A stretch of DNA of 64,000 nt from Oculina patagonica. Its lineage: Eukaryota. A program made the position numbers and the translations under genes. The stretch lies in the NCBI RefSeq assembly GCF_052425735.1, contig NC_135759.1:33170001-33234000 (forward strand), in the 5' to 3' direction. How positions within the stretch are numbered: the first letter of the stretch is position 1; each line of letters begins with the position of its first letter. The notes below the pieces were generated by a model. It worked only from the letters and a program-made list of their open reading frames with translations. It did not search any database and had not been told where the DNA came from. Shown here one piece after another: positions 17,799 through 53,534 of the stretch.

Positions 17799-18010
17799 TT
17801 ACAGGTAGTCGTTCACGTTCATCGTATCACCAGTCTCTCGACTCATCTCATTGGTTATTGATGGCGCTGGCTTTTCCTGGTCAGCGGCTGTTGGTGGAGA
17901 GTCGAAGACCTGCGATGCTGTTGATGTGTCGGTGGGTGGACTGGGGTCGATTGAGTTGGAGACCTGTGGTTCATCGGCTTGAGGTATGGTAGTCTGTGCA
18001 GCGGGTTGGT
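17799..18010 (-). CDS. Terminal exon of the Arg-rich gene, encoding an acidic Pro/Thr/Ser-rich tail
   Basis: Acceptor (T)8AG at 18011-18020, phase 1, matching the donor at 18471. Translates as DQPAAQTTIPQADEPQVSNSIDPSPPTDTSTASQVFDSPPTAADQEKPAPSITNEMSRETGDTMNVNDYL*. Confidence 0.75.
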
Positions 18011-30000: not shown

Positions 30001-33000
30001 CTCCTTCGTATAATTCGCTTCCTTCGCCTTCGTCGATGTCCTCGCTTTCGCCTGACAATTCTCTTCCATCTTCGTCCGAATCTAATTCTTATTCTTCCTC
30101 GTCGGAACCTTATTCTGCATTTTCGCCTGCCATAACGCACACGGAAGACACGCTTGTACCGCACAACTGTTCTCCATCGTTTGTTGACCAGGAGTTTAAA
30201 TCGTCTGTTAGGTTTCCTCAAAGACCTCCATCTACCTCGGCGGCGCACAAATACCCTGCCTCTGGTGCACCTTAAGGATAAAATGATAACGAAAAGTCAA
30301 CTTAGATATGGCATTACAGCGGAATTATCAAACACGGAGAAACAGACGTGTTTATTAGGTTATCAAACACCAAGAAGAGTTATATCAAAGGCTCTTTTGA
30401 GCAACCTTGTGGTAATTCGATTAATTTGCACCTTAGTATTACCCCCAAATTTATGGGCAAAAGACAATGGGACACCTTTGGGGACAAAAGCAAACACAGT
30501 AGGGGAGGTGGGATAAAACGTATTTATTTTACATTTTATACATAAATTTATTAGAATGGAGTGAGCGAGCGAGTGAGTGAAATTTTGGTCCATTCGTTTA
30601 TCCCATAGCATACCATGAGCATAGCATACCCTGCATAAAAACGTTTTGAATGTTTGAATGTTTGATATAACTTCCCGTTTTGAATGTTTGAATGTTTGAT
30701 ATAACTTCCCAAACGGGCTTTACACTGAGTGAATAATAAGGAATTATAATCACCATAATATATTATTTTAGAACATTTATCAACTGAACGCCACCAGGAG
30801 CATTGTCACGATATTTTTTTATGACTACTCTCAAACTGAAGGAAACCTTAAAACACTAGAGACGTAATAAAAACCCCAATTAAATAAGGATGGTTTCGAC
30901 TTACGAAGATGAGAAACTTAAGTTTGCCAATTTTTTTTCAAGATGCGTTGTCCGTGACGTAGTTCCTTTAACATCTTTGTGTTGGTTTTCTTAACTCGTA
31001 AGCCAATCACATGTCCACACGCGCAAAGCTTTGAGATCAATACTAACTGAACGATATAAATTACTTAATTGTGTGGCAAAGGTATGGATCATTAATCTGT
31101 TAAAACACAATGAGATCACCACAAAAGGTATCAGATTTCACACCTTATTCTTCTTGGCTTCTTTCTGAATCGGAAGTATAGCTTGCGTTTCCAGCGGTAG
31201 ACACGTCTCCATCGTCTATTATACTTCAGTCGCAACACGCTGTAACGCTGTCGCCTTCGTTGACGGCGCCTTCGTCTACGTGTCCTGCGTCTCCTCCTTC
31301 GTATCTTCCTTCTGCGTCTTCGCCGTCTTCGCCTTCTTCTCCTAACCTTTCGCCTTCTCCTTCTATTTCTTCTGTACCTTCTGCGTCTTCGTCGTCGTCT
31401 TCTTCTTCTTTTGGTTCTTCTTACTTTCCTGTATCTTCTGCGACGTCGCCGATTAACTCGTCTTCCACGCCTGTACCTCCTTCTCACTCTTCGTCCCTTC
31501 CTTCGACGCCGTCTTCTCACCTTTCGTCCCCTCCATCGACGCCGCCAGCGCCTTTTAAGTGCTTTCCATTTCCTGCCGTACCACATCCTAACACGTGAGC
31601 GGATTATTCTTATTCTTGTAAATCGTCGACGGTAGCGTATGGTTAATCTTCGTTTTATTATGCGCACGCGTCTCCATTTCCTCCCTGCAAAGATCTTCAG
31701 CTTACGGCGCACTGCTCTCCATCTTCTTCTGAATTTTGCCAGGAGCCGGCCTCTGTAGTACCTGTTGAAGTTTATTATTTGTTTATTATTCGTAAATTGT
31801 AAAATGGACCATTTTACCATTTTTTCTTGTAAATAGCTCGCGCTTTCTTTGTTTGTGATGTATTAAAATAAAAGCCTTTAAGCTCCATATTTTATTGTAC
31901 GTTCAAATCTTGAGTGTATGCCCAAGTCTTGTGCTCATTTTAACAATTTATACTATGAAGAGCTGAGTCTCTAACTTAGTGTTCTATTGCACTGTTGCTT
32001 AGTGTTTCGTTTCGGAGCGTAACCGTTATTTGCAAGTTTATGAAAATTTAATCTAGATACCGTAATTTTAAGCCTCGTATTGTAAGCGAAGCAGCAGTAG
32101 TTTTCTAGGAGATTATTTAAAAACTTTTGCTGCACTGTTTTTTGGATACAAAGGAAAGTTACACTAAACCAGTAAATGTCTCATTAATACTGAAAGAGTT
32201 CTTTCTTAATGCGGGAAAGTTACTGGAATCGTAAAGGAGCACTTATTACATTTCAAGTGCCAAACTCAACATCAACATGAAAGCCATAAGTAATGTTCAT
32301 ACCTGAGCCAAACATTCCTTTTCTTGAAACGGAACGTTAGGCGCCCTCGTCGTCGGTACACCTTCCTCCATCTTCTGAAATATCTGATCTTCATAACACA
32401 GCCACGTCTTCCTCTGCGGCCTCGACGTCTTCGTCTGCGTCTATATCGCTTTATTCCTTTCCTTCTTCTTCGTATCCGTCTCCTTCTTCGTCTTCTTCTT
32501 CGCCTTCGTCTTCGCCTTCTCTTTCTCTTCCGTCTCCTCCTTAGTCTCCTTCGACGCCTTCTTTTCCTTACCCTTCTTCTCCTTCGTCTGTTCCTTCGCC
32601 TTCTTATTCTTCTTCGTCGTCGTCTTCGCCTGGACACCCTTCGACGTCGATACCTTATCCTCTTCCATCGTCGTTTGTATCTCAATCCGAGTCTTCCAGT
32701 CCTGTAGATTCTTATTCGTCTGATCTTTCTCAGGTAACGAACGCGGAATCCTCGACGAACCTTTCGCCATAGTTTTCGAAGTTTGACTTGCATGACGCGG
32801 CGCCTACCGCGGAGACGAATCAATCTTCCTTTGCGGCGGAGTGTTATTAGCCTGCGGTGGATCCTGAAATGAAATGAAAAGAAACAAATGCTCAAGTTGT
32901 AAAAAAGGTTGGCGAAAACAAATTTACATTTAAGAAACCTTTAATCGTTGGCAGGTTTAAAATATAATTGCAAAGATTTATTGGCTTTCGAATAAGACTG

Positions 33001-36000
33001 TCCCAATCGGGATTCGGGTAGGAAATGTATTTTTAATTTAATTGCACTTGATGGTAGAGTTTGGTGCCCGGGCAAATTCTTACTGCTTGATATTAGTTCC
33101 TAAATTTGCCTTTTTCTTCTATGATCTGTACCACCAGCTGGGATAATGTATGGAATTTTCAGCCAAATTTGAAAAAATTAAAGTAAAGCCTTTTAAGTCC
33201 AACTGGTTCATAGCCCTGGTTGTCATGTTAGTCCATCGCAGGGTACTGCCAAGCATTCTGCCAGGTTGCCCCATCAAATCGCCGGTGGATGCCATTTTTA
33301 ATGATCTGTGTCATTATTGTTAACCAGGATTTTCGGAACGGAATCATCATTATCATTAGCATTACTAGCTGGGTTTTCTTAATAATATCTGTAATCCCAA
33401 TCTGCACGTGCTTATCATCGTCCCAAAACACCTAAAAGTAATACCACAGTTTCTTTTACTGAACATTTATTACCTGACTCGGTAAAGCCTTCTTTTAATA
33501 CGGACTATTAGTCGCTTTCTTCTTCTGGTCACATATCGCCATTTCCTCCCGTAATAAATTCGTATCCTACAACGACGTCTGCGTCTTATTCTTCTTCGTC
33601 TTCGCCGTTTTCTCCTTCTTCTTCGCACCCGTCTTCTTCTTCGTCGTCGTCGCCTTCTTCTTCGCAGTTTACGTTTGTATCTTCTCCTTCTTCTCAACTT
33701 TCGTCGTCTGTATCTTGTTCGACGTCTTCGTACTCGTTTGCGTCTACCTCCTCGTCTCCTTCGTCGACGCCTCTTAACTCTTCTCCATCGTCTTCTGCGT
33801 TTCAGATAAACCCTTCCGCGTCGCAGTCGAAGTTTCACGTTTCGTCTTTTGAACCGTATCAACCAGCGTCGTCCGTACCTCCGTACACCTCGCCATCTTT
33901 TGTTCACTCGAATTCGCAACCGTTTGGTGAAACGACGTATCTTTCGCCAGGTTCTTCGCTTCGTCCTCACATAAATACAACCTCTGCGGAACCTGGACAC
34001 ACAAAGAATGCACTGTAAGTAATGATTACCAAAAAATGTTCCATGGGTACAAAGAATGAATAGTACATGAATACATAGCTATTTTTAGGTTGGTTCTCAT
34101 GATCGCCCCGATCGTTTCAATCGCATTGATCATATGCAAATACTGAGACAATCGTAGGTGATCGAAGCGATTGGAAGCGATCGGGGGCTTCCATATGGTA
34201 GTCCTGGTATGAACGTGGACCTACGAAAAACAATAAGTTATTGCAGTTTTACGGCGAAGAAGAGAAAAAGAAGCTAGAAGGATAGAGCACGAGCGATCGT
34301 GATCGCCTCAATCGCCGCAGACGTTAGCGATCACCTGTGTAATGTTCTCATATAATGGCCCCGATCGCAAGAAAACTTTTTGAAGTGACTAAGACGATAG
34401 AAACGATCGGGGTAATTACATGAGAACCAGCCTTTAAGCATCACGTTTGTTATCCCCGTGAACGGCAAAAGTCACACTTATATTTTCGACTGCCATTTGT
34501 TCATGAAAGTGAACGATTTCACGATTGGCGTGAAAAGGTGAATTATTCTTTACTTTTCTGACAAATTCATTTTTAAATGAACAACAGGCTAAGGTGTTAA
34601 CTATTTTCCGTTAAGATAAGTGAATGGATTGTTTCCCGCTGCGCACATTCAATTATACACCATATAATATCCCTTACAATCACTACAAAGGGACTTGTGT
34701 TATTCCACGCAGTAGCACGTGTATTAAAGAAATCCGAAAAATGATAAGAACTTGTGGATTTGTTAAATTAGCATGAGTTTCCTTTTTGAGTTGCGTCTTT
34801 GTTATTAAGTTTCATTTTAAGATTGATCTTTACGTTTCAAAATCCTCTTATACTTATCGCAAAAAGTTTTATCATTCTCTAATCGGTGATGCTAAAATCT
34901 AAAACGATCGTCAGTTGTAGATATAAAAAAGGTACCTTAATCGTCGTTGCCTTCGTTTGTAGGTGAACAGGTACTTGCGACCCCGTCGGATTACACTATA
35001 CCAGCGACGTCTCCAATAGAACCGTATTCGGCTGCGCTTTCGCCGCCGTCGTCTGCGTTTCAGTTTACGTCGATATCGTCTTCTCCTTCTAATCCTTCTT
35101 CGTCTCCTTCGCCTTTTTCTTCGTTTTCTTCGCCTGAGTATTCTTCGCCTTCTTCTTGATCGTCGCTTTCTTCCTCGTCTACCGTATCGTTTTCGTCTGC
35201 GTCGCTTTATTCGTTTCCATCGTTTTCTGTAGCGTATTCTCAGTCGCCCTCGTCTGAAGCCTATCAGTCTGAATCTCTTTCTAAAGCGGATTCTAAATCG
35301 CCCTCGATAGACTCGCACTCTCCTGTACCGTCGGCCATACCGGATCTTAATATACGGTCGTCGTACCACACGCCATCTTCTGTTTATATAGATCCTTACT
35401 GTCTTGCGTCGGATCCTGCGTGGTATTAAAGGAATGAAGTTCAATACGGATATAACAAGCGTTAAAGTTCGAGAATAAGCCTTATGCTTACTTTTGTTCA
35501 ATAAGTCTTTTTGGTGGGCGTTATCAGTTTTGGAGAGGCTTTTATTTTGGGAAAGGATCTTGTTTCTGAAAACCTTTTTAGATGTTTAAACGCATAAGGT
35601 ATAGTGCTGAAATGGTCATTACAAAAACAAGTCCAAAAGGGGCCTATAGTCTGAAAATGGCAAGCAAAACTCTCTGAACATAATAGAAGGATATAAGAAG
35701 AAGAGGAGGAAGGAGAGGGAGGATATAAGGAGGGTTAAGGGAAAGGGAGCCTAGAATATGTTTCTTTGGAAAACTGACAAACGTCACTGACTAGCTAACC
35801 TGATAATTCTCCACGTGCGGCCGTATCGGAATCTCCATACGTTTCGTGACCGGTACACGCGCCTGAATTTACCGCGGTAACGATAAATGATACGGGAACC
35901 TCTTCTCCTTATCCTTCGTCTTCGACGTCTTCGCCTTCTTACTCGTCTTCTTCGTCTTCTTCGCCTTCTTCGTCTACGCTTTCTTCGCCTTTGCCTTCGT

Positions 36001-39000
36001 CTCCTTCTTCTCCTTCGCCGGATTCTTCTGGTTCTTCTTCTTCGTCTGTATCTTCTTCGTAGTGTTACCCATCGGCGACGTCGTCGCACTTTAACTCTTC
36101 CGTAACGTATGCTTATGTTCTTGTATTTTCGTCCCAAACGGAAGTATATTCGTCGTCGGCGAACTGTGAGCCAGCGCCATTTTCTTCGGTAATACACTCT
36201 GACGCGCCTCGTGCCTCGTATGATACTCCATCGCCTTCCGTATTTTACCCTGAATGTGCCGCGGTAAATTCTGGCGATTAGAAAGGAAAAGTAGTTATGT
36301 TAGAATTGTTTACATAAGATGTGCCCTAAGCAACTTTTAAGTCAAAGAGATAACCAGTTAATGGGTTTAAGGCTCCATGAATCTTATTAAACAAGATTCT
36401 TCGGTTCTTCTTTTTTTCGGGAGAATAAAAGATCGAATGCTTTAGTATTGTCCTGCAATAGACCGTGGGTGTTGAAACGAAAATATTTACATGGTCTATT
36501 ACTTTTTTACTTCCTCAAAAACAAATTATTGGAGAAGGCTGAATTCTCGTATCATATAACAGTAAGGCTGTCAAATGTACTTTTTCGAAAAAACGCACCC
36601 TTAGACAAAGAAAAACTGCAAATGCATGATACTTCAGTAACTTTATGGTCAACACTGCAACTTATATAGACCAATTTAACAGTTCCTATCGATTTAAAGT
36701 TCTCAGACAGAATGAGAAATATAAGGTATAGAGGCTTTGAAAAAGGGAAGTCGTTTCATTTACACTGCGAACGGCTTCAGATGTTGTTAAGTTTCTTGAC
36801 TCGTTTACATCGTATCTGTCTTAAAATGAAACAGGATACAAAAAAGTAACACTAACGCGCAGTATCTGTTGAAAATTTTGTTTGCAAAAAGCTGTTTGAT
36901 ATTGTGAATACACATACTTACCGGATTGCTACTGGTCGTCGTTTAAATCGGAACCTCAAGAACTTGCCTCGCCGATACACTGATCTCCAACGTCGCCGCC
37001 ATTTTATTCGCATAACACATCGGCGACGACGCCTTCGTCTTCGCCTTCGCTTTCGTCTTTTGCGCCTGATAATCCTCCTTCGCCTTCGCCTTCTCTTTAC
37101 ACGTCGTCTTCGTCTCCTCCTTAGCCTTCCTCGCCTGCCCCTGTATCGGCGCCGTCTGCGTCTGATTATCCTCCATCGCCTTCCATAACGCCATCGTACT
37201 TTTCCGCGTCTGAATGACAATCTACGGTTCTTACGCTTGTAGCGCAGGTAGAAGCGCCGCTTATAGAATCGAACGCGATGCCACCTTTTTCGCCAGACCA
37301 TAACGTTGGGGCGACGCAAAACGACCCATCTTCGTCCTTTTCTAAACCTCAATGTACCGCGCGTGAATCTATTAAATGAAACAAAAGACATTTGTTTAGG
37401 AGCACTCAGAATCTAACACTTAGAAACTAGGTTTGCCTAAACATTTGCCTTGTTTGAACAAGACGCAAAATTATGCATTTCACCTTAGTTCGTTCCCCGT
37501 TACACCTTACTGAGTAAAAGTTTTCGATATAAAACGACAAATGATATAAGTCACTGGCTTTCTGGAAAATGTGTGAACTATGTACTTATTTACATTCTAA
37601 GAAACCGAGTGCGTGCATTAAAGCTTTATCCAAAATCAGCGCTGAGCTGTGCTAACTTGATGCCAGGAGGAAAAGACCCTGAACGATAATAAATAATGGA
37701 CACGAAAGACCGGTCTGCTCGTAATTTGCGACTTTTCGGATTTGTACCTTTTTTTTTGGACAACGTCCCTTCGGTCAGGTACACACCAAATTGAAAAAAA
37801 CGTTGACCCTGTGAAAAGCATTAATCACGAGCGATAAGACCGGACTGAATTCTGGGTAGACAGCAGGTAAGCTTAGTTATATTCCATTTTTTACAATCAA
37901 GGTATTTTCTTTCTTTAAGACCTTTAGGAGCGTGATTTATACAGCCTGCCTTATTATTATGTTCATTTTGTCACAGGCGACGATTTAAAAAAAAAACTTT
38001 TTCCCGATTTACCGGTAAACATCTAGGTCGCATCGTTTATGGTTTACGCTTTCCATGGGTCAACATTTCTTCAATCAGGTGTGTACAGCAGCTAAACGAG
38101 TTGACCAAGACTAGGTCTTGTAAAGAATACGGGTGATGGACTCGGACTGTTTCTGGGCCCTAATATCTTGTCAAATTAGCTGTTTGACTCGGTCAAATTG
38201 ATGGCCTTGACAACAAATTTGTATTCATGTGCTATACTTGGGTTTTTCTGACATCAAGTGAGGTTCCCACAATTTGCAGTTATTAAATGAAGCGTTTAGT
38301 ATACTGCTTAGGCTGCTTTTTCTACTTAATTTTAAAGATACGTTCAATTAACGAGAAACTTGATCCAAACGACCTGTTTTCTATTAATCATCACTCACCT
38401 GATATATCGTCTTTTCCTTCCTATTCGGAGCACAAAGCGACGGCGTTTTCGATACACTCGCCGCCACCGACGCCTGTATCGAATACGCATCACGCAACCA
38501 CGCTTTCGTGTTTTACGTCTACGCCGTATTACCCGTCTTCTTCGTCTCACTCGCCTTCTCCTCCTTCTTCTCCTTCGCCTTCTTCTTCTTCGCACCCTTC
38601 TCTTTCTTCTTCGTCGTCTTCTTCTCAGCTTTCGCCGCCGTCTTCGGCGCCTGTAGCGTCGGCTACGAGTGCTAATTTTTCTAAGCCTTCTGTTGTATCT
38701 CACAAGGAATCTTCCACGTCGGATTGTCACGATACGCCGTCTTCGTTTATAGACTATGGTCAACTTACGACGGTATCTACGTACCACACGCCAAACTCTT
38801 CCCACGCGGAGTTTTATGCTTGGACGTCGAATAACTCGTCGTCTTTTACCGTAGATGGTTATCATTCCTCTGTAGTATCTATTTAGAACATGACAAAAGA
38901 AATACATAACACAGTATTAAAACAAAGATTTTATATCTATTTTTTAAGGTTAAACTGAGATCGACCTCCTTATCAACCACTACTGCTGTCTGGATGGCTC

Positions 39001-42000
39001 CTTTTCGTGGGACCTGTATTTTCAAAGCTAAGAGGCCGCTACATTCCAACGCTGTCAGATAATAGTTCAGAGGTGAGCGATTACTTCTTTGCGAGCCGCG
39101 AAGCCGTATATTCCATTCTCTCTTACCCCAGTAAATTGTTGGAAAAACCTAGCAACTGTTCCACCACGGATAGTATAAAGACTGCGTTTCTTGCAAATTC
39201 AACAGCAACAGCAGCTATCAAGTCTGGGCCTGGCTAGCCACTGTATTTTCTGCCCATATACGCTGAACTATTAGTAATGCCATTCGTATCGTAATTACTG
39301 TTTCCTTTTTTTGAAAAACTTTCTCACCTGATTGTTCTATAGCCTCTTCTCCTACGAATTACCAGTCTGCGTCCAAAGCGATATACCTTCATCCATCTAC
39401 GCCCATACCGGAAGCTCATTACGCAACGGCGACGTCTTCTTCGTCGTCGTCTTCGCCTTCTGCGCCTTCTCCTGCGCCTTCGCCTTCTTCGTCGCCTTCT
39501 TCTCTTCTTTCGGCGTCTTTGTCTCCTTCTTGAGCGCCGCCTTCTCTTCCTTCTATATCTACGTCTCTTCCTTATTATTCTTCTCCTTCGCCTTCTGTTA
39601 TATCGCCGTATGCGTCGTCGACGCTTCAGTATTTTCCAGCGTCGTCTTATGCGCCATCTAATTATTCCGCGACGGATCTTAAAACGTCGATATTTCTTTC
39701 TGTATTTAATGACCAGCCTCTTTCGGCGAATCGTTATTCTTCTCCATGTTCTTCCGACACGGAATTGTATTCGTCTTTTGATATTGCGTATGGTTGTCCA
39801 TTTTCTTCCCACCTTGATACGGACCACGCGTCGTCTGATACTAGTAAAAAAAAGTAAAAGTGGAATATGATTGTTAGTGGGAGCCCTATTAAATCATTAT
39901 GCGAACTGTTGGTGATGCTTCGCTTTAATTTAAATGTTTGCAGGATAATAACCCCAACCCTGCCTCCTGTCTCCTAAAGACCTCTTCGTCCTTAGAAAAT
40001 TTCTCATAGCACCATTTTAATAGATTCAAGCCAATATTTGGCATGGGCACAGACTCCTATGTGAAGCAGGTTTTTTGGAAGGCTTAGAGACGAAAACTTT
40101 CAACAGGGAGGTAGATGTATGTTTTGCATTTTTGGTGGGGTCGAGGCATGTCCAGTGTAATCACTGGGCGGGAGATTCTTCATCAGGTTATCATTTTTGG
40201 TGTTTTTGGATTTAGTACACACATGTACAAGAGCACCCGTATAAACGCATGTATAGCCCCACTCGTGGATAAGCTATTAACAGACTGTGTTGGTGAAATG
40301 CTTCTGGAAGGAAAGTGAGCGTGCTAGTGTTTTTGGTGCTGTTTAGGAAAAGGTAATATTATGTACGCCCTTTATCTCTGGCAATAACATCTTTAACATT
40401 CATGTTCGCGTTACATTTACTATCTTACATCACAACAAGCGAGAAAAGAGCGAAGGCGCGACAATCTTAGGGTGCGTTCCTCTGAGATGGAATCAAAGTG
40501 CATCAAAGAAACCGATAACCCACTTTAGGTTTACACCATAATCCGAGTGATCTTGGATCATTGACCTGATCCGGAGCATTCCAAAAGAACGCACTCTTAA
40601 ATTACATTTTGCGAGAAAAGAATGCAAAGGGGCGACTAAAGAACAACAGGAGAAGGGCGGCTATCCGAAAAGCCAAAGTAAATGGCCAAAACTATATGAG
40701 GTGTAGGATACTGGTGAGTACCTCTTCTGATCCTCTGGTAATATTGGGAATAGTAAACTATTTTGACTGAAACTCTCTTGGTTGAAGGGTGTTTGAGACA
40801 ACCCCTTCTAAAGACATTTAAATCACTGACTTACTAGATTCTTCTGTATCCTCTTCGTGTGCGGAATCTAAGGACTCGCCCTCTGCGGTACACTTTTCGC
40901 CATCTATTTCGGTAACGGAAACGCATTACACAACGACGTCGGGATCTACGTCTTCGTCGCCTTCGTCGCCTCCTTCTGCGCCGTCGGCGTCGTCGACGTC
41001 GCCTTCGTCGTCTCTTCCTCTTTCTTCTTCGCCTCAGCGCTTTTCTTCTTCGTCGGTATCGTTTACGTTGCCGCCTTCGTACCCTTCGCAAATATCTTCT
41101 TCGTTTCCTTCTAATTCTGCGCCTTCTTCTGATTCTTCTTCGTCTTGAGGTTCTTCGTCGTCTCCTTAGCGTTTGCCATCGCTTTCTGTATCGGTACAGC
41201 ACTCTTCCTCTCCTGATTCTAGCTATTCTAATTTTCCTCATGAAGCGGAAACCGAAGCCTCGTCTGCCGTACGTCCGTAATGTACGCCACACTTTCCTTA
41301 CACGAACTTGGAATAGGCGAGTAGTCGTTCTTAGGACACGTCTTCTTCGCATGTAATAAACTATCGGTTTACGTCTATAGAATCTAAAAAAGGGTTAAAG
41401 AAGAAAACAATTTTAGCATTGAATTCGCTTGAATAAAATTCCATGTTGTTACTGCAAGATGGCTGCTATGTTCTTTAAGCACTTTTGAAATTTCTACTGG
41501 GAGAAACAGAAGCTTTACTGTGCTCGTTTTTTGAAAGTTTTATTTTTGTCGTGGCAGCTCATTGGAGAGCACATCAAGTAGTGTCTTTAGCAAGGCCGAA
41601 AGCAAAAAAATCGGCCCGATAGAAGTTAAGACAAGATGTTTACAATTGGGTTCAGCCTTCATTTCAACCATCTGCAGACATCCGTACTCCTTGAAGGGTT
41701 TCGTCGTTTGGAACCATCATTTTGAAGTTTGTATACCGTGAATAGTATGACCTAGTTCATTGAAATCGCCGGCTTATAACAAACCTCAGACCGTCTTAAG
41801 GATATTTTCATCACTTGTGCAAAAAAGATAGCGTCATAGTCTTACCTGACATATCCAACTCTTCGCCCAACGCGGAACACTAATTTGTTTCCTCTGCGAA
41901 GAAGTTTCCTCCAGCGACGATAGAATCTGAACCGTAAGACACACCTTCGGCGTCTTCTTTTCTGTATTCTTCTTCTCCTTCTTCTTCGTCTTCTTCTCAC

Positions 42001-45000
42001 CCTTCGCCGTTTTCGTCTTCTTGCCCTTCTCCTCCTCCTTCGTTTTCTTCTCCTTGTTCTTCTCCTCCTTCTTCTTCGCATTTTTCTTCGTCGCCGTCGC
42101 CTTGCCTTTCGTCCTCGGTATCGTCTCCTTCTGATAATCCTCCAGCGTTTACGCACCCGGTATCTCAGCAGGCCACGGTAGAATCTCAAAGGTCTTCTCT
42201 TTCGTCCGAAGCGGATGAAAAATCGTCGACGGTACCGTATCGCACTTCGCCATTTCTTTCCTACACGGATTCTGACTGGGTAACGTCTCTTTATCCAGCG
42301 TCGTCCATAACGGATATAAGTTATGCCTCTCGTGAATCTAAAACGAGAAAACAATAACAAACAGGAAAAATAATCACACACAGATTTTACTGAACCCTGT
42401 CAGTTTAGCTTCCTCTTGATGATTGCCAGACATACATCCCTGTTGGACTGTCAGTTGCACATTTTAAAAATCTACAGTCTCAACTCTTTATTATCAGCGC
42501 ACGATTAATCGATCTGAAAGTTCGCAAGAGTTTAGAAACCTGCTCATCAAACTTATAAAAAACACTCGTCGACTCTAGTGAACATTTTTACCAGGTTCTA
42601 GATAGTGCACGATTTGAGAGCGCATGTGAGTTAACGGTCAAATGAGGGCGAGATTTCAAACTTTAGCCTTATCCTCGTTAAATCTTAGCCAGTACCCAGT
42701 TAGAGCCTTACCTGATAATCCTCGTCACCCTTCCGAGACGTATCCTTAATACGCGTCCCCTCCTGTAGACAGGATACCAGCGGCGTCCACGGCGAACACG
42801 TATCACGCATCTGCGTAACCGTCGTCGCTTTACTCTCCTTCGTCGTCGTCGCCTTCTGTTATACCTTCTTATTCGCCTCTTTCGCCTTCTTCGTCTTCTT
42901 CTTCGTCTTCTCTTTATTCTTCGCCGTCGTCTTGCCTTTCTATTTATTCTTCTTCTGATAATTTTCCATCCTCGTTTAACGCGTACGCGCAATCTTCCTC
43001 TGTAGAATCGTATTCTTCGAATTCGCCGGCCGTATCTTATCACTAATCCACGTCCCCGTTTTCTTGGACGTATCCAGCGTCTGCCGATTCTGACCCGGAG
43101 ACGATAATTCGGTTTGCGGATTCGGATCCATCTTCTTCTCGTCCACCTGACTCTAAGTACACCACGACGATAACTGAAAAACGACAGACAATAGATATAT
43201 TGTTATTTCTCACTACATAAAAGGGTATGTTTTATCTAAAATAAATTTACTGATTAGTTTTAGGATATTCTCTTTTTAATTCTTACCATTTTTAACATGT
43301 AAAACACCTCTATGTTGCTGCATTACGAAAAACATATCTTCCTAGAGGAGTAGCCTATCCGTCATCTTAACGATTCCCGGGTGACATGTTTTGGACTAAA
43401 TAAGTTAACCCTTTTTTACTGTCTGCTTTGCTTTTTAATGATTTGGTCTAAAATTCAAATGTTGTGAAGACCAGACTAAAAAGAGAATTTTGTTATGCGT
43501 GTGCTCTTCACCTTAGCTTATTTCAGTCATATCACCACGCCTCATGTCATCCATTATCTACCATAACAAAGCTTGCTCTCCACCCTACGGTCTTTCTGGT
43601 ACGGACCTCGCTGTGCTCAATTCGTAATACCAAAGCCATAGGCCTAGATTCCTCCGGTACGGCCCACAGACTTGGTTTATAAGATATATATATATATATA
43701 TATATATCTTATTAACCAAGCGTAAGTGCGGTACTGGGAGAGTAACATCCGAGGTCTTGACAGTACGCACAAAAAAACAAGGGCTGATATTTTCTCGCTT
43801 AGTTAATAAGAGATTTATTACACGACTCAACATAGTTAGTAAATCCCACTACTAACTATGCACTGAAAAAGATTTTTAGCAGATATAGGATAAAAAGAAC
43901 AGGATTCTAGCAGGGGACCAACCGGTTATTTCTGTCGGGAAAGAATTCCATATTAATTAAAATGTTGGTTTACAAACTAATAAAAAGGTTGAGAGGGTTA
44001 TCAATTTTTCCCTTTTGTAAACCAAAAAATAGATTGTCGAAAAATGAACTGTTGGCCAAAAAGCGAAGCTTCGAGGGCAACTGTGAAATTTTGAGTACAA
44101 TCTTTCAGCCAAGGGCTGAATATCCTCCAATATACCAGCTAGCCAGAAAGGGGTTTATTTATTTTATAACCCTCCGATTAATTTCTACATCGCGCTTTAT
44201 CGCCAGTAAATTTATAGGAAAAAACCTACGTAATAAACCCGGCGTAACAGTGGTTGAAACAAATGTAAGTTGCATTGGTTTACGTGATATTTTAACTCTG
44301 TGATTTCATTAAGAGTTAGAATTGAATAAGGTGACTTCATTCGTTTTTTTTGTGCTTGCCTTCAAATTCAGGCGACGGATATCAAATCGGACGGGGTATA
44401 TTCGCTAATACCCGTCGTCCGATTTTGTACCACGTGATGCGTTTTGTCCAATGGGTGCGCGCAAAAATTAATGGGTGGGTTATAATTAGAGAATATTGGC
44501 CCGGCAATTGAGCAATCTGATTGGTTCCTTTTAGTTATTGGCCCTCTGACTTCTTTGGTCGTGTAGTAAGTCTTTAATTTGCTGTTAATCGCTTCAGGAT
44601 TTTTTTTAAGTGAGAGTAGAAGAGATTTCAACTGAACGAGAAGTCACTTTCTGGCAGTTCTAACACCGAATCAAGAAATTAAAGTAAATTATTTCTTACC
44701 TTAGATACTTGTATTTCCTTCCGAAACGGAAAACCAAACGCTTTCCTCGTTTGAACACTCTTCTCCATCTTCGCCTGAACCGGAAACGGAGCACGCAGCG
44801 GCGCCTTCTTCTTAAACGCTTTCTGCGTCGTCTGCGTAGTCGTCTTTGTCGTCTCCTTCGTCGTCTTATCTTTCTTCTGTATCGTCTTCTCTTTCTTCTC
44901 AATCTCCTCCTCCGTCTCCTTTTCCTTCCTCGTCTTCTGTAATAGACCCTCTTCCAGCGTCTTCCGATCCTCATTCTAACCCTTCTGCCAATTCTCAGCT

Positions 45001-48000
45001 TTCTGTTCACTCTTCTGTATCTCACTCGCAAGGACTTACCGACCCGTTTGACGTATCTCCACCTTTTTCCGATCCAGACACGGATCTTTCTAACCACTTT
45101 GCGCACGACTCTTCTTCCAATTCTCACCATTCCTCGTATCCACCTGGATGAAGCAACCACAGAAAACCAGGGAATAAATATCAATTTCAGTGTTATAAAT
45201 CAAAGAAATATCTGGTTTTAAATCCATCGTCTTTGCATTCTGGTACAACTATTCTACCAAAAAATTTCAAAGCCACTAAGAGTTAACCAACTGTGAGTAA
45301 TATAACCTTGAAATGGTGAATGTATTATAACGAGACATGTATGAAGTACTCTATCGTGTTTAACTTACAAACAAACTTTCTCTTGCATCAAAATCGTAAT
45401 ATAGTATCACGCTTGCCAGCTAAAGTATTACTGAATTTTTCGATGCTTTTGGTGTCATGTTAATTTAGCAAATCACTACCCTGAATAGCTACATCATTTT
45501 CTTCAACTGAAAAAAACAAGCAAACGTTCCTTACCTAAATGGCTGCCAGCGTTTTCTTACTCGAATTCTTAGTCTTCCACGTTTTCTGTACACCTTTCTC
45601 CATCTACGAAGATATCGGAATCTCAACACACATCTACCGCGCCGCCTTCGACGTCGTCGACGTCTTCTGCGACGTCTTACGCGCCGTTTTCGCCGCCTCT
45701 GTCGCCGTCGTCTTCGTCGTCTTCTTCTCTTTCTTCTTATCTGTCTTCGTCGACGCTTTCTCCGCCTTGTTCTTCGTTTTCTCAGGACACGCTTTCTATA
45801 CCTTCTTCTCCTATACTTTCGTCTTCTCCTTCGGTATATAATTCGTCTCCATCGTTTTCCTCTGTAAACTCTCACTCGTCCTCGCGTTAACCTGATGGGT
45901 CTTCCTCTTCGGCCTTTCCTGGTGTAATACAGTCTGCGACCATATCGCCGTAGTCTTCGCCAACGTCGCCCAACCAGTACACGTATGCGTCTTGTTGGTT
46001 TCTTCAGTGAGAGCCATCTACGTCTACGCCAGATATAAAGCCTTCTTCGTATGTATCTTTTGATTAAGAAAGAGATAGCAGATTTCTTACAATAACGAAA
46101 CTGTGAAAGAACTTATGTCTTTTAGTCCTAAGAGTGATAGTCTATTTAATGCCAAATCATCAGAACCCTTCCGAGTCGCCATTACACTATTTTCAAGTTC
46201 AAAATGAATAGAATAATCTTTCAGAAATAGTTTTCTAAAGATTAATAGTATTTATAGTTTACACAGTTTATTGAAATGGTGACTTGGATAAAGTGAAAAC
46301 ACAGTTTCTTTTACTCATTTTGAACTCTAAAATGGTCCCATGACGACTCCGAAACGTCGTTTAATGTAATCGCTGATTTTTACATGCTTATGTATCATTT
46401 AGCCTTTGCTGATAATCACCAGATTGTTAGGAGAAACCAAACTATCATGAAAATAAAGGAATGATGATGTTGGAATTCCCTCGAAAGAAATAATATTTTT
46501 TTTGCAATGCGCAGTGCTTTAATATATTGAGTAAAAATTTCGCTTGGGGCTTATTTCCACAAAAAAGTAAATTTACATTGACTAATAATGGAATTAGTCC
46601 CAACGTACCTTACTCTTACAAATTTCCTGCGCACACGCATCACCAGCCGACCTCGCCTTCTATACACTCGTCTCAATCGACGGCGATACCTAATACGCAG
46701 CACACATCGTGTTCGCCTTCTTCGCTTTGTTCTCCTGCGCCTTATTCTTCGTCTTCGTCTTCTTCGTCTCCTTCGTCGTCGTCTTCTTCTCCTTCTTCTT
46801 CGTCGCCTTCTTCTTCGTCGTCGTCTTTTCTTTTTCCTTCGCAGCTTTCTTCTCCTGTTGTATCTCCGTCGTCTTGTTATTCTCTTCCATGTTCGTTTAT
46901 AGCGCAACCTTATTCTCCTTCTTGTTATTCGCACCACTCTGTATTTTCTTCTGTAGCGGACCCTCAGTTTACCGCGATAAAACTTGGGCCTCTTCCATGC
47001 TAAACCAACTCGTATCTGTAGGCGTCTCTTGACTGACCGGTAGCGTCCCTTTCGTCCTATTTTCACGCGTCGTCCTCGTAATCTAACGATTCAAACCGAA
47101 TATCGTATTAGCTTGTTATTGAATAATGGGAGGCGCGGTGGCCTAATGGTTAGAGCGCCGGATTCCGGATCGAGTGGTCCGAGTTCGAGCCCCGGTCAGG
47201 GTCACTTGTGTTGTGTTCTTGGGCAAGACACTTTACTCTCATAGTGCCTCTCTCCACCCAGGTGTATAAATGGGTACCGGCGACATAATGCTGGTGGGGG
47301 GGGGAACCCTGCAATGGACTAGCATCCCATTCAGGGGGGAGTAGAAATATTCCTAGTCGCTTAATGCTACGGAAACCGGGACAAGCTCCGGCAGTGTGGG
47401 CCGCTTGGCTCGTGGCTTCTCCGTTTCCTCCTTTGTTATTGAATAAACGATTTATATTTTCCCCTGGGGGCTTAACCCTGCTTAAGTTTTTTGGCAGATT
47501 ATGATGTTATTGATTATGACTAATGTGTTATTCATTCATTCGTCTATTCGTTCGTCTTCATATTTATTTTATTCTCTGTGCTATAACTTAGGAGCTAGAT
47601 CACACTTTTAGGTACCTTCGTAACGAAAAAACTGACCTTTAAAATCAAACGAAACATCAAAAATATTTTTTCAATGAGTCAGGTAGCAGGCTTATTCTTT
47701 TTACACAATTTGTAAGATGACAAACTAACAGATAACCTGGATTTTATATAAACTAAAAAAATTAAATGGTTAGATGCAGATATACAACAAAAACAATTAT
47801 AAATTAGAATAAGTGGTAGCAGTTTTACAGCTGTAAAGGCTTTCAGCACTGATGGAATCCGCTTAAGGGTTGAGCATTACATAGATAAGGCAATCGACTT
47901 TCCTTGAATTTTTTCAGGATGGAAAATTTGTCCACAAAGTCGATGCCTTCCACATTGTATTCTCCCTTTGAGTTATTTGTAAATGTCGGGAAGTGAATAT

Positions 48001-48262
48001 CTCATATGTGGTCTTTTTTAAGCGTGCATTAACAACTGAAAAGAAAAACTGGAAAGCCTACACCTGGATACCCTATCAGTCAACTTCACTTTACTTTAGG
48101 GGGTATCTACTGATTTTCCAACGCAGTTATTTTAAAGAGAAGAAATATGTCTTAAAACCCGTAACATGAGAAGCTAGTAATTTTTGGAGGCGGAAAAACA
48201 AGTCTAGATTTGAGAGCAGACGGACGCACAATCACTTTTGGAAACTTTATCGAAACATACAT

Positions 48263-48299
<37 letters not shown>

Positions 48300-48310
48300 A
48301 CGACAGATGC

Positions 48311-48345
<35 letters not shown>

Positions 48346-51300
48346 TAGGCAGACAGATAGGCAGACACATATCTTAGCAGAATCTTAAAACTACAGCTCA
48401 AACAGTAGTGAAACTTTCCATATCCCTCACGATCGATACCTATTGTTTCCTGAAATCGACCAGCTTTTGATGAAGACACAAATGGAAATAATTTGAATAC
48501 AAAATCACCTAGCATTCTTATTACCTCCATAGTTTCCATCTCCTTCCTATTCTGATGTAAAAGCCTCGACGTCGTCTTATGACTCGTTTCCAACGACGAC
48601 CATACCGGTAACGCATCACGCAAACTGATCGCTTTCGTCGCCTTGTTATTTTTCTACGCCTTCTTCGTCTACGTCTTCGTCTTCTTCTTTTTCGTCGTCG
48701 ACGTCGTCGTTTTCGTCGTCGACGTTTTCTTCGCCTTCGTCTTCTTTTTTGTTTTCTTCTTCGTCTTCTGATTCGCCTTCTCCTTCTCGATATCCTTCGC
48801 CTTCGTCCCCGCCTAATTCTTCTCCATGTTTTTCGGATTCGCAGTCTTATTCGCCCTCTGAATATCCCTATCTTTCTGTACCGTCTGCCTCGTCGTATGC
48901 ATAATCTTCTGCGACGAACTCTTGCATTTTTCCAACGCTTTCCATACCTGATCTTCACTCTGTTTCGTAGCTTACGGATTCTACGCCATCTCTTTCCTCG
49001 CCTCTTCACGTACAAGAGACCTTTGCGATACCTGGTTTAAAATAAAAAAAGAGCGTTGGAAAACTTAAAAAGGAAGTAACATATTGTCAAGGTGATTTAT
49101 GTGTCATCAATTAAAAAAAGTAAAGAATTCTTCCAACTTTTGGTAAGCGAAAATGCTTCAATAATAGTATTTATTACGCTTATTTCGATAAGCATAGTGA
49201 ACCCCATAAGGGTCTGTAAATCAGTGAACAAGATTTGCTTGGAGAAAACATAACCAAAATGCACGTCGAATGTAGTAAATAATGTTTACTTTATTGAGAG
49301 ATTATAAACGATAATTTAACAAACGTCACGACAAACGGCAACTAGTGAGAGCTAGCGTGATTATATCTTGGCCGTATTATCAATTAACCCAGTTACAATT
49401 ATTACCTAAATCGTCTGTAAGATTTCCTGTATCGGAAGACAAGTTTTCTCCCTCTTCGGATCACTCTCCTCCAGCGACGACCATAACGGAAACGTATGAC
49501 GCAACGGCGGCGCCTTCTTCTCCTTCGTCTTCGCCGGCGCTTCCTTCTTCGTATCTTTCTCCTTCGACGTCTTCGTCGTCTTCGTCGCCTTCGTCGCCTT
49601 CTTGCTCTTCGTCTCTTGCGTCTTCTTCGCCTGGCTTTATTCCTCCTGGATCTTCTTCGCCTTCGCCTTCGTCGTTTTATCTTGATCCAGCGTCGTTTGT
49701 ATTTAATTCTGATTCGCCTTCCCAGTCTGATCACTCTGACTTTCTTCATGTACCGCAATTTCAGGTATCTGCCCGCCCTGCTCACATATCTCCATCTCCG
49801 GCCAAATCTCACCATCACTGTCCTCCTAATGGGGACCCAACGCCTACTCCTACCTACTCTTGCTCTTCCTCTTCGGAATCTGTAAAAACAGGAAAAGCCA
49901 CAGTTCTTGAGACCTAGCAAATTCAGAACTGTTGATAACTAGTCAACGCGCAAGACAAATTAATTTGGCCCAGACAAATTAATTTACGGTTTTTAAGCGG
50001 AGAGCATTATCCGAAAAAATCCGATCTTTTGAGTATCCAGCTGAAGACCTGAAGACCTTTCAAAGTGGCTTTGGCTCCCACTTTTCTTCAACAAGATGCA
50101 AAAACACCATGCACGCAGAGAAAAAATAAAGTTAATTACTGTAAATGCTACAATGCTTCAAAAAACTGAATTTTACGAATCCTATGTCGCGAATGTAAGC
50201 AACAGTTGCTGCAAAGGTATCTTTTAAAGTCAGTTAAAATCCTACTAGACTGCAAGACAGTCATATATTGTTCACGAACATGCACGCTCGGCCTTGTAGC
50301 CCACACCCCGTTGCATGCTTTTAACGCTTCAATTTATGGACAAGAGCGACTGTTATACAGACTAAAATCCTAAAAATCAAAGAGACCAGATCGTTCATCA
50401 GTGAGGCTGCTTATCTCTGGTTAATGAGCTTCTGGAAAAGAAAACTAGTAAGAGTATTGTTTTTTCCCTGAAAGGGGTACCCCCAGTATTTTGTCATGCT
50501 TGCACTAGGGCAGAGGGAGACAATGTGAAAGAAAAGTGCTTTATTCAACGACGCAACAACCTCCGTCAAGGTTCCAACATGGGCTTTATAGGCCATCACG
50601 CCTCCTATCAAACATATTATTGCAATCTTTTCCTGTGGATTCCATTTCTTATGCCACCTATTTCACTGTTTTATTGCAAATTAAATATTGAAAATTTATC
50701 ATTGGTGCATCTTATTTAATTCTGCTAATCCAATAACCGCCGGTGTTCCTTTCCGCTTCTATTGTTGTTACTCCTGTGAGTTTTGAATCTAAATAAAATA
50801 TTAAGCGTGTTTTATTTCCAGAAATCTGTTTTGCATGGAAGTTTATCCAAAAATGCTTTTAGAGCCATCGTTTTACGAGAAATTATCAAGGCCGGAGTAA
50901 GGTTTTTAGGAGCCAGCCGCTATTTCTTTAAGTGATTTTACCGGGAATAGTACATAAAATTTCCACAGTCTGCAACCTTAACAAAAGCTAAACTAGAACA
51001 CACCTCACTGATATATAACGACGCCCATAAAGGAATCTCCAGTTCCTTCCAACTCTGCGAATGGGTCTGAAGCGGCCAGCATATTTGAAACGTATCAATG
51101 AACGTCGAAGTCGCTTTCGTCGTCGTCGTAATCTTCGCCTTCGTTTGCGCATTCTACGTCGTCTTCGCCTTCGTATTCTTCGTCTTCGTCTTCGTCTTCG
51201 CCGCCGTCTTACACGTCGTTTCCTCGAAATTCGCCTTCGTCGTCCACGTCGTCCTGACATAGAAATAGTATCAGGAAATACTGTGCGATGCCGGTTATAA

Positions 51301-51891
51301 ACCCAGCCCCTCCCCCCTTCATGTGGTCCCTCCCAGTTAAGCTAAAAGACCATTTTTCTGTTAACAGTGAAAATATCTAGGTTACTAGTCCGTCCCAAAG
51401 AAAGGTTCCAAATTCTAAGTTATAAGACTACCCAAAGCCCCTTACGAAGTTGTTTTAGCCCAGGGCCTATGAAACTTCGCCAAGGGTTTATGCAAACGGC
51501 ATTTTACGGTATTATAAAACAAACATGCATGCATTTATTTATCGTGATAATCTAAAAGAAGTCACTGCGAGCATGAGAAATTCCAAAAGAGTTTTTTTGA
51601 GTTTATCTGAGAGGATTGGAAGATTCCTAAGTAAAACAAATAAAGGAATCGTCTTGGCACGTAAGGATTCCCGGTTGAGGTTCAAGTCTGTCCTGATCGC
51701 ATTTTTGTAAAATATTCCAATATTGAAAAACCACAATTGATGAGAATTTTCCTCTAAAAGTTGTAGTACTCTATTTTATGCTAAGATGTTAAAACTATTT
51801 AAAATATTGCCTGCCAGCTAAGAAATGATGCGTTTTGTGACGCAGTTTTCACTTGAGTGTCGAAAGTAAATTGCGTTTGCTTTGGTTTTGC

Positions 51892-51924
<33 letters not shown>

Positions 51925-53503: not shown

Positions 53504-53534
<31 letters not shown>

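Follow-up and report, generated by a model that had tools for sequence, protein, structure and literature searches.

Which kind of protein carries the motifs of arginine, hydrophobic residues and R-R-W that recur on the minus strand between positions 32303 and 49879 of a 64,000-nucleotide stretch of coral DNA (the window), and is it related to the beta-hairpin antimicrobial peptides with which the preliminary description compared them? We found that the motifs are part of one huge gene of Oculina patagonica that is expressed and conserved. As modelled, its product is a string of ~45 modules, each made up of a beta-hairpin meander with an arginine face and a poly-Arg linker that resembles protamines and varies in length.

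A single spliced and conserved gene

On the minus strand, positions 32303 and 49879 mark the outermost splice boundaries of a series of 15 consecutive exons. They belong to a single gene that stretches, in window-extended coordinates, from ~17.8 kb to at least 101 kb. Together the 15 exons encode 2,479 amino acids with 52.8% Arg and neither Asp nor Glu, and all six Arg codons are used. Not one stop interrupts the 2,479 codons of the coding frame, compared with 138 and 79 stops in the other two frames and ~135 in shuffles. The window has more than 30 Arg-rich exons that are flanked by AG and GT in a constant phase 2. The Arg/hydrophobic pattern reaches past the 15 exons, covering 20.6-63.5 kb in the window and continuing to 101 kb. 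Adding up the exon-like ORFs of the whole gene gives about 8,500 amino acids (8,485) with 47% Arg and a net charge of roughly +4,770; of the 22 acidic residues, 12 are in the C-terminal tail. A chain with so few acidic residues and several thousand net positive charges is unable to neutralise itself; among giant proteins, we know of none that is more arginine-rich. The linkers, about one third of the protein, consist of 77% Arg and 8.5% Lys, in Arg runs of 4-30 interrupted by single neutral residues, while Trp/Tyr-rich beta domains make up more than half. Cys is rare (0.6% of residues, 0-2 per exon of 149-188 amino acids) and has a single conserved site adjoining the linker. A truncated duplicate lies upstream. 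The features are listed from the 5' end of the 15 exons, followed by the remaining parts of the gene:

49406-49879, minus strand: exon 1 of 15; hairpin block, poly-Arg linker and C-V-I-R-F-R-Y-G-R-R-W hairpin block, contains CVIRFRYGRRWRRVIRRGRKLVFRY; in-frame ORF, (Y)nAG/ and AG/GTAATA, phase 2/2; Desmophyllum orthologue with 66% amino acid identity
48525-49031, minus strand: module exon; ORF and splice sites; Desmophyllum orthologue 74% identical
46609-47082, minus strand: module exon with a long, almost pure poly-Arg tract; donor AG/GTACGT; Desmophyllum orthologue 66%
45535-46056, minus strand: module exon; ORF and splice sites; Desmophyllum orthologue 71%
44700-45143, minus strand: module exon; ORF and splice sites; Desmophyllum counterpart split where its poly-Arg tract is frameshifted
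42712-43173, minus strand: module exon with LRVRIGRRWIRP; covered by RNA contigs; intron 42338-42711 to the next exon removed in run X1; orthologue 68%
41846-42337, minus strand: module exon with VRIRVGKKWRSAIRY, used for folding; both flanking introns removed in the X1 contig; orthologues 60-78%
40835-41383, minus strand: module exon; exact boundaries from the spliced contig; donor TA/GTAAGT, so that the split codon becomes Tyr
39328-39840, minus strand: module exon; exact boundaries from the spliced contig
38399-38878, minus strand: module exon; exact boundaries from the spliced contig
36922-37368, minus strand: module exon; ORF and splice sites; orthologue 67%
35800-36270, minus strand: module exon with the conserved Cys replaced (G-S-R-I-I-Y); donor AG/GTTAGC
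34936-35415, minus strand: module exon; splice sites; orthologue 72%
33474-33992, minus strand: module exon; ORF and splice sites; orthologue 72%
32303-32863, minus strand: module exon, last of the 15; donor AG/GTATGA
20646-31761, minus strand: ten more module exons of this kind, further downstream in the gene; ORFs, splice sites, alignment
18467-19114 (ORF limits), minus strand: penultimate exon, beta-hairpin domain without poly-Arg tract; aligns with 5'-type domains
17802-18032 (ORF limits), minus strand: last coding exon, acidic Pro/Ser/Thr-rich tail followed by the stop; 12 D+E versus 3 R+K
50991-63541, minus strand: upstream gene part in the window, beta-domain exons of ~165 amino acids without poly-Arg alternating with short poly-Arg micro-exons; ORFs, alignment; a gap of N lies at 53670-53861

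The gene is transcribed and spliced. A public contig of 7,099 nt (run X1), 100% identical to the window, spans five exons and joins 38399-38878, 39328-39840, 40835-41383, 41846-42337 and 42712 onward at the predicted GT-AG introns. All segments that it skips end in CT..AC, equivalent to GT..AG when read on the minus strand. The sequence runs are labelled only 'RNA?'; joints that lack the introns speak for RNA.

The gene is also under purifying selection, linkers included. At the Desmophyllum pertusum locus (L012) the same exons are found in the same order and, after masking of poly-Arg, 9/9 Desmophyllum exons match their positional counterpart best. Orthologous exons are 60-78% identical, paralogous ones only 41-54%. 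Between Oculina and Desmophyllum, dN/dS amounts to 0.39 as a whole; the beta parts taken separately give 0.45 and the poly-Arg parts 0.27. Of 362 hydrophobic positions, 334 are hydrophobic in both species, and 35 of 40 Trp residues are retained. The two species use a different codon at 206 of the 582 conserved Arg positions. Across 25 paralogous exons the domains align almost gap-free, whereas linker length varies about fivefold. Some Desmophyllum exons are frameshifted, always in homopolymer-like poly-Arg tracts, where assembly errors are common.

Motifs and predicted fold of the modules

All three strings quoted in the preliminary description (VRIRVGKKWRSAIRY, CVIRFRYGRRWRRVIRRGRKLVFRY and LRVRIGRRWIRP) were found in the minus-strand translations. 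Motifs were counted in the 1,583 amino acids outside poly-Arg tracts and compared with composition-preserving shuffles. G[RK][RK]W occurs 21 times versus 1.0 ± 1.0 expected (z 20), the pattern hydrophobic-basic-hydrophobic-G-basic-basic 25 times versus 1.7 (z 19) and [RK][RK]W 42 times versus 14 (z 8.5). The claimed recurrence of Arg/hydrophobic motifs with G-R/G-K and RRW is thus real, with z values of up to 20. The claimed alternation of hydrophobic residues with Arg holds in part: hydrophobic-basic-hydrophobic triplets are enriched (151 versus 111, z 4.5), but strict i/i+2 alternation is confined to stretches of 3-5 residues and the lag-2 autocorrelation is r 0.01. Hydrophobic positions are correlated at lag 18 (r 0.31), which points to a hairpin unit of 18 residues.

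The preliminary description had also proposed that the modules fold into amphipathic beta-hairpins or a beta-meander, and suggested AlphaFold on single domains. AlphaFold2 (AF2) was given paralogue/orthologue alignments, which were shallow and mostly paralogous, and predicts such structure. Exon 41846-42337 (pLDDT 83.5) is modelled with 8 strands before and 5 strands after a helix at residues 77-131 (poly-Arg); the 165-amino-acid domain of exon 54353-54889 in the 5' part of the gene (pLDDT 80.8, pTM 0.62) is modelled with 17 strands. Outside the linker both models are all-beta, in tight hairpin meanders whose two-residue turns sit exactly at G-R, G-K, R-G, R-R and R-K. Hydrophobic residues gather on one face of the predicted strands, a value equalled by shuffles in 60/2000 and 23/2000 cases. 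Since AF2 leaves out the massive like-charge repulsion, its highly confident poly-Arg helix is likely over-confident.

For the modules searched, no match to a known protein family emerged. Pfam hmmscan at E ≤ 1 returned no family for five module exons and for a sixth only Circovir_ORF3 at chance level (E 0.059, below the cut-off). In a sequence search of the PDB, profile A1 had no match at E ≤ 1 and the exon a single match at E 0.32. For the model of the 165-amino-acid domain, the best Foldseek match in the PDB had an E of 0.2, the best VIA-align wide match a Z of 4.5 (WWE domain), under the background level of 7-8, and the ESM Atlas gave TM ≤ 0.37; the sole match in AFDB clusters was an uncharacterised protein of 889 amino acids (E 1.4e-4). 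Known beta-hairpin and short-repeat families of Pfam (e.g. MORN, choline-binding, YD, Kelch) had no match among the six module exons scanned.

Possible secretion and function

Near the 5' part of the gene, two ILEI-like domains are located among Arg-rich exons and share their strand. When their C-terminal halves were scored, the copy at 96223-96462 (extended coordinates; L006:2223-2462) reached 30.5 bits against Pfam PF15711, above the cut-off of 27 (E 5e-7), and the second copy 16.8 bits (E 0.0098), below it. The outer splice phases of the ILEI exons are compatible with the flanking poly-Arg micro-exons; from strand, position and splice phase we infer that they belong to the same transcript as the Arg array. 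ILEI/GG domains are known from proteins that are secreted or lumenal, e.g. FAM3, POMGNT1 and CEMIP, and two such domains in frame suggest that the protein is secreted. Neither an N-terminus nor a signal peptide was found in the 101.2-112.4 kb examined, and a secreted product is argued from the ILEI-like domains.

We favour the reading, to which we give slightly less than an even chance, that the product is a giant multivalent scaffold condensing polyanions, and we consider this more likely than a classical precursor of antimicrobial peptides. The protein would be synthesised in the secretory pathway. As a multivalent polycation it could bind and condense polyanions, candidate partners being sulfated glycans or mucus, acidic matrix proteins, poly-gamma-glutamate and nucleic acids. 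The hairpin domains, built of 18-residue units with two-residue G-R, G-K or R-R turns and with one face of Trp, Tyr, Ile and Val and another of Arg, would fold once their charge is neutralised or screened, and the one conserved Cys per module may permit cross-linking. We infer secretion, polyanion binding, folding upon neutralisation and the biological role from the features described above. In its more far-reaching form, which is possible but on balance doubtful, our proposal is a new domain class: an arginine-faced, acid-free hairpin meander that folds only on a polyanionic template or at high salt, repeated ~45 times with protamine-like linkers, and serving the coral as a secreted condensing or coacervating scaffold (of mucus, cnidocyst matrix or calcifying matrix) or cut into diversified beta-sheet antimicrobial proteins. 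If this were true, trypsin-based proteomics would be blind to such a protein.

Abundant R-X-[KR]-R sites might let proprotein convertases shred the protein in the secretory pathway, which counts against a scaffold and would fit better with an antimicrobial polyprotein. There, convertases would cut the poly-Arg linkers, which are continuous dibasic sites, and carboxypeptidases would trim the ends, releasing dozens of cationic beta-sheet domains or hairpins into the mucus to kill through membrane or polyanion binding. The predicted amphipathic Arg/Trp hairpins are physically akin to membrane-active peptides, and every module is individually conserved yet distinct, as a diversified arsenal might be. 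However, the dibasic sites are everywhere, so no discrete processing site stands out, and conserved cleavage motifs beside individual hairpins are lacking. The linkers are under purifying selection (dN/dS 0.27), which disposable spacers would not need, the hairpins lie within fixed-length domains that AF2 folds as one unit (pTM 0.62), and no signal peptide was found. Cys pairs and acidic neutralising spacers are missing as well, and we regard this polyprotein as unlikely.

A self-assembling material seems similarly improbable. Seawater would screen the charge, and the hairpin domains would fold and stack by their hydrophobic faces into a gel, glue or thread, for instance a substrate cement or adhesive cnidocyst/spirocyst content, comparable to designed (VK)n hairpin hydrogels and to polycationic cements from marine worms and mussels. 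The one-sided hydrophobic faces of the predicted strands, the single conserved Cys per module, which could be used for cross-links, the giant modular size and the 'sticker' composition of Arg with Trp/Tyr all agree with this, but the hallmarks of adhesives (DOPA-prone Tyr-Lys repeats, phosphoserine partners) were not seen. We consider it very unlikely that the product is a giant protamine-like protein condensing DNA in the nucleus or in sperm. Its poly-Arg linkers, which would pack the DNA, do resemble concatenated protamines, with runs of 4-30 Arg and single neutral breaks, but ~8,500 amino acids compare with <100 in protamines, Trp/Tyr-rich beta domains occupy over half of the protein, the in-frame ILEI-like domains speak for the lumen of the secretory pathway and the tail is acidic and mucin-like. 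Finally, a functionless transcribed runaway exon array or untranslatable low-complexity sequence, as the extreme composition, the truncated upstream duplicate, the poly-Arg frameshifts in some Desmophyllum exons and the stalling of ribosomes on poly-basic tracts might suggest, is hardly credible given a frame of 2,479 codons free of stops, the conservation of splice sites and phases, one-to-one exon orthology between genera with a dN/dS of 0.39 and retained hydrophobic and Trp positions, and frameshifts confined to homopolymer-like tracts prone to assembly error.

Comparison with known systems

The suggested likeness to tachyplesin, polyphemusin, protegrin and arenicin does not extend to membership of their class, since the coral protein has no Cys pairs, short peptides or acidic spacers. 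Both have short antiparallel strands in which Arg alternates with bulky residues, hydrophobic or aromatic; the turn is tight and often at Gly-Arg, and the positive charge is very high. The amphipathic hairpin with its tight turn is present in the predicted structure. The peptides, however, are free chains of 17-25 residues with one or two disulfides, released from a small precursor with signal peptide and pro-piece. In the coral protein no hairpin has the Cys pair of a disulfide lock (0-2 Cys per exon), and no small precursor of free 17-25-residue peptides was seen in the 25 aligned exons, where the hairpins are contiguous, fused into domains of 120-165 residues that are repeated ~45 times in one chain of ~8,500 amino acids. 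With D+E = 0 in 2,479 amino acids, there is neither an anionic pro-piece nor an acidic spacer. Trp/Arg-rich antimicrobial peptides (lactoferricin core, indolicidin, tritrpticin, synthetic (RW)n) share R-R-W and W-R-R, with guanidinium paired with indole, but they are short and mostly non-hairpin and show no sequence homology or similar repeat architecture.

With protamines and protamine-like SNBPs the linkers share Arg clusters with single neutral spacers (77% Arg, where one Ile, Val, Tyr, Ser, Thr or Gln at a time splits the runs), like the protamines of fish and cephalopods. Unlike these small proteins, the coral protein (~8,485 amino acids) is ~100 times longer, has its linkers, about one third of it, between folded-looking beta domains, and adds ILEI-like domains and an acidic tail. 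The two in-frame ILEI-like domains, one above the gathering cut-off, are shared with the ILEI/FAM3/GG-domain proteins (PF15711), but those known are either small and cytokine-like or enzymes that process glycans, and none of them is fused to Arg-rich hairpin arrays. By analogy, designed hairpins (MAX1-type (VK)4-turn-(KV)4) share amphipathic cationic strands, which should remain unfolded at first and assemble once their charge is screened or paired with polyanions, and marine cements (sandcastle-worm Pc, mussel foot proteins) share polycation and aromatic chemistry in a marine secretion. The coral protein has no sequence relation to either and no evident DOPA or phosphoserine system, and its self-association is hypothetical.

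Exon array, splicing and transcription

The window (contig C2:33170001-33234000 of the assembly) consists of AT-rich, eukaryote-like DNA. From 20.6 kb to the window end, its minus strand holds over 30 open frames, each 150-240 codons long, with an Arg content of 35-54% and a spacing of 1-2.5 kb. Most of these frames carry a donor (...AG/GTAAG or ...AG/GTGAG) at their 3' end, and the stop that closes them is the TAA or TGA within the GTAA or GTGA of that donor. At the other end of every frame stands an acceptor, a pyrimidine tract followed by AG/N, with a codon phase that continues the preceding exon. Positions 32303 and 49879 coincide with the outermost splice sites of 15 successive minus-strand exons. 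Every intron in this part of the gene is in phase 2, and with few exceptions the split codon is one for Arg.

The 15 exons encode 2,479 residues with 52.8% Arg, 7.9% Lys and neither Asp nor Glu. Across these 2,479 codons the Arg frame has no stop, compared with 138 and 79 in the other two frames and about 135 in shuffled exons. Arg is encoded by all six of its codons (AGA 452, CGA 345, AGG 218, CGT 121, CGC 113, CGG 61). The Lys/Glu-rich, Ser-rich and Leu-rich ORFs on both strands and in other frames arise from the same DNA as frame artefacts. Two further features of this region are an intronic short tandem repeat at 48204-48623 (minus), which reads (CLSV)n in one frame and lies just downstream of exon 48525-49031, and 192 N at 53670-53861 (assembly gap or mask) in an intron-like interval between exons of the gene.

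A 7,099-nt contig from the public run X1 matches the window with 0 mismatches and joins 38399-38878, 39328-39840, 40835-41383, 41846-42337 and 42712 onward. The stretches that it skips (449, 994, 462 and 374 nt) all end in CT..AC on the plus strand, corresponding to GT..AG on the minus strand. Another contig, 4,158 nt long, spans the 5' part of exon 42712-43173, and its length implies that it also reaches into upstream exons. The runs are labelled only 'RNA?', and it is difficult to account for intron-less joints at canonical splice sites except as RNA. Joints with just 21-27 nt on one side, which lie within poly-Arg tracts, are probably assembly chimeras. In another run with a different organism code (X19), introns are retained and substitutions are numerous, so that it represents DNA of a relative.

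Module anatomy and predicted structure

Module exons were compared in an alignment of 25 paralogous exons and their orthologues, and the 5'-type unit of 165 residues was aligned separately. The first ~85 residues of a module exon form an N-terminal block, which starts R-[YFC]-x-R-G and aligns almost gap-free. It is followed by a linker with 77% Arg and a highly variable length (~20 to ~110 residues), and by a C-terminal block (~35 residues) with a conserved Cys in first position (C-V-[ML]-R-[FI]-R-Y-x-R-R-W-R-x-V). Because the exons are joined head to tail, the unit between two linkers consists of a C-block and the N-block of the next exon, about 125 residues in total. In 5'-type exons the 165-residue unit is encoded in one piece. 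The two unit types are related (hhalign probability 83%, E 9e-6, 43 columns).

The preliminary description quoted three motif strings, all of which we found in minus-strand translations. Outside the poly-Arg tracts, G-[RK]-[RK]-W occurs 21 times against 1.0 expected from composition-preserving shuffles, and the pattern hydrophobic-basic-hydrophobic-G-basic-basic 25 times against 1.7 expected. Hydrophobic positions recur with a period of 18 residues (autocorrelation 0.31), and strict alternation of hydrophobic and basic residues is short-range only, extending over 3-5 residues per strand.

AF2 models of the hairpin regions
165-residue domain, 17 paralogues: mean pLDDT 80.8 (core ~90), pTM 0.62; 17 beta strands, no helix
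Exon 41846-42337, 30 sequences: mean pLDDT 83.5, pTM 0.38; 8 strands, a 55-residue poly-Arg helix, 5 strands

The turns between predicted strands comprise two residues, G-R, G-K, R-G, R-R or R-K. Examples from the AF2 models are R-I-R-V and K-W-R-S-A-I-R-Y joined by G-K, and R-F-F-I-R-F and K-R-R-P-L-R-F-Y joined by G-R. Within predicted strands hydrophobic residues prefer one parity, which shuffles matched in 60/2000 and 23/2000 cases. AF2 tends to over-confidence on charged homopolymers, and the pLDDT of 96-98 for the predicted poly-Arg helix is to be discounted. A language-model folder working with no alignment gave a pLDDT of 72-74 for the 165-residue domain. The proposal that the modules form amphipathic hairpins or a beta-meander agrees with all of these predictions.

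The domain model has no convincing counterpart among solved or predicted folds. Foldseek against the PDB gave no convincing match for the 165-residue domain (best E 0.2), and the best hit of an exhaustive VIA-align search, to WWE half-barrels, had a Z of 4.5, which is under the usual background. Structure comparison with the ESM Atlas reached a TM of at most 0.37, and a feature search there was also without a usable match. The AlphaFold DB clusters returned a single match, an uncharacterised 889-aa protein (E 1.4e-4). Pfam contained nothing for the modules, and sequence searches of the PDB gave nothing significant, their only match having an E of 0.32.

Extent and conservation of the gene

We examined 90 kb of upstream sequence past the window. 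In extended coordinates, which continue past the window end, the gene reaches at least 101,239. Its upstream part alternates pure hairpin-domain exons of about 165 aa with poly-Arg micro-exons (trimmed coding parts of about 20-110 aa), and the introns there are in phase 1, again splitting Arg codons.

Features at the ends of the gene and upstream of it
17802-18032, minus: ORF of the last exon, an acidic Pro/Ser/Thr-rich tail with the stop
Within ORF 18467-19114, minus: beta-only exon downstream of the 15-exon array
Extended 94126-98314 (L006:126-4314), strand of the gene: ILEI-like domain exons, two domains, between Arg-rich exons at 93.2 and 98.9 kb
Extended 112367-118581 (L007:8367-8855 and L007:9147 to L008:4581), upstream of the window: incomplete tandem duplicate that covers the last eight exons and carries an acidic tail exon of its own

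Scored against Pfam PF15711, the C-terminal half of one ILEI-like domain reaches 30.5 bits (cut-off 27) and that of the other an E of 0.0098. The outer splice phases of these exons match those of the neighbouring poly-Arg micro-exons, creating Arg or Gly codons, and the domains themselves are unusually Arg-rich. We infer that they belong to the same mRNA as the Arg-rich exons. Summed over exon-like ORFs, which gives an estimate and not a verified gene model, the protein has 8,485 residues, of which 47% are Arg and 22 are acidic, the tail holding 12 of the latter; its net charge is close to +4,770. A scan for an ATG, a hydrophobic stretch and a donor found no convincing N-terminus or signal peptide at 101.2-112.4 and 118.2-132 kb; the sole candidate of compatible phase lies near 110251, and its hydrophobic core is weak. 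The first copied exon of the upstream duplicate is present as its C-terminal half only, and this copy may represent either a pseudogene or a short paralogue. Between it and the most upstream recognised exon lies a minisatellite (L007:4755-5591, extended 108755-109591) that reads (SFVR)n in several minus-strand frames.

In a search of its own genome the 165-residue domain was confined to this locus. Apparent paralogues on contig C7 were rejected as relatives, since they derive from a 27-bp minisatellite, translated as SRGRLVSVK, with several of its frames open. This simple tandem DNA (L014:6387-9963, ~21.956-21.960 Mb), with more than 800 codons open on both strands and (SRGRLVSVK)n on one, matches the hairpin-domain profile weakly (E ~1e-6). 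Inside the gene, the beta-domain exons 57216-57782 and 59588-60103 are near-identical over their first ~160 residues and each adjoin a micro-exon (58467-58694 and 60849-61080), as if an exon pair had recently been duplicated in tandem within the gene. At 3882-4241 (plus strand), an ORF fragment presumably resembles the N-terminal part of a SET-domain methyltransferase and probably belongs to a neighbouring plus-strand gene.

Queries with a single exon found ORFs of 61-78% identity in other assemblies. The sole named relative is the 'hypothetical protein' OS493_017713 of Desmophyllum pertusum, a fragmentary model that covers two exons in conserved order and then slips into a wrong frame. At the Desmophyllum locus itself (L012, MU826359.1), counterparts of all exons from 49.9 to 33.5 kb are present in the same order. 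With poly-Arg masked, 9/9 intact Desmophyllum exons matched their positional counterpart best, scoring 1.5-2 times the next best. Orthologous exons are 60-78% identical, compared with 41-54% for paralogous exons; the array is therefore older than the split between Oculina and Desmophyllum, and each module has been kept separately. The same module plan was found in a more divergent assembly (L013).

The dN/dS ratio was 0.39 overall (dS 0.53; 1,493 codons), 0.45 in the hairpin part and 0.27 in the linkers. Between the two species, 334/362 hydrophobic positions stayed hydrophobic and 35/40 Trp were kept, while 206/582 conserved Arg positions use a different codon, 89 of them swapping AGR and CGN. 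The variety of codons, the lack of stops specific to one frame, the splicing and the dN/dS ratio argue against the poly-Arg ORFs being an artefact of polypurine DNA, a reading that we reject. Four orthologous exons in Desmophyllum are frameshifted (L012 ~6445-6941, 11396-11963, 12604-13168 and 14006-14559), in three cases inside the poly-Arg tract. In the public annotation the gene is split into models of 790, 254, 66 and 2,554 aa, one gene model ending in a Lys/Glu-rich wrong frame. Such frameshifts and split models probably stem from errors made in assembling or annotating homopolymer-like DNA.

A profile search of 1.84 billion representatives yielded 84 matches, all short single-exon ORF fragments except a 2,943-aa bacterial repeat protein (P0081), which was a spurious match. 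Relatives of the gene in protein databases are unnamed single-exon fragments and one 'hypothetical protein' only. No description of such a protein was found in literature on Arg-rich or polyarginine coral proteins, protamine-like cnidarian proteins, the Oculina cell atlas, polycationic mucus or nematocyst poly-gamma-glutamate. Trypsin, as used in standard proteomics, would leave very short peptides of this protein, which are difficult to identify, and the gene is fragmented by gene predictors; both may explain why the protein is unnamed.

Possible function and likeness to antimicrobial peptides

We infer that so Arg-rich a chain must stay paired with anions at all times, and the ILEI-like domains suggest a secretory lumen. 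We tentatively favour a multivalent scaffold that would bind and condense polyanions, its hairpin domains folding when their charge is neutralised. An antimicrobial polyprotein processed by convertases seems unlikely: the Arg/Trp hairpin motifs would suit it, and the hairpins are not free peptides. We give the same low weight to a self-assembling gel or cement triggered by salt. The poly-Arg linkers recall protamines, and the ILEI-like domains point towards the secretory route; a protamine-like condenser of DNA appears improbable. A functionless array is very improbable, the modules being individually conserved.

An expressed protein of about 8,500 residues, nearly half of them Arg, with individually conserved modules challenges assumptions on translation, folding and trafficking. 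If the domains fold as predicted, they would represent a new beta-repeat fold with a stability dependent on counter-ions, which would be relevant to protein physics, coacervate biology and biomaterials. In coral biology, the gene suggests that secretions or matrices have a polycationic component that has gone unrecognised. The natural Arg/Trp hairpin sequences also offer a concrete set for antimicrobial or nucleic-acid-condensing assays.

The likeness to beta-hairpin antimicrobial peptides such as tachyplesin, polyphemusin, protegrin and arenicin, which the preliminary description had drawn, does not hold at the level of the family. The hairpins described here are without disulfides and without acidic pro-pieces, and they sit in domains of fixed length that, like the linkers, are under purifying selection.
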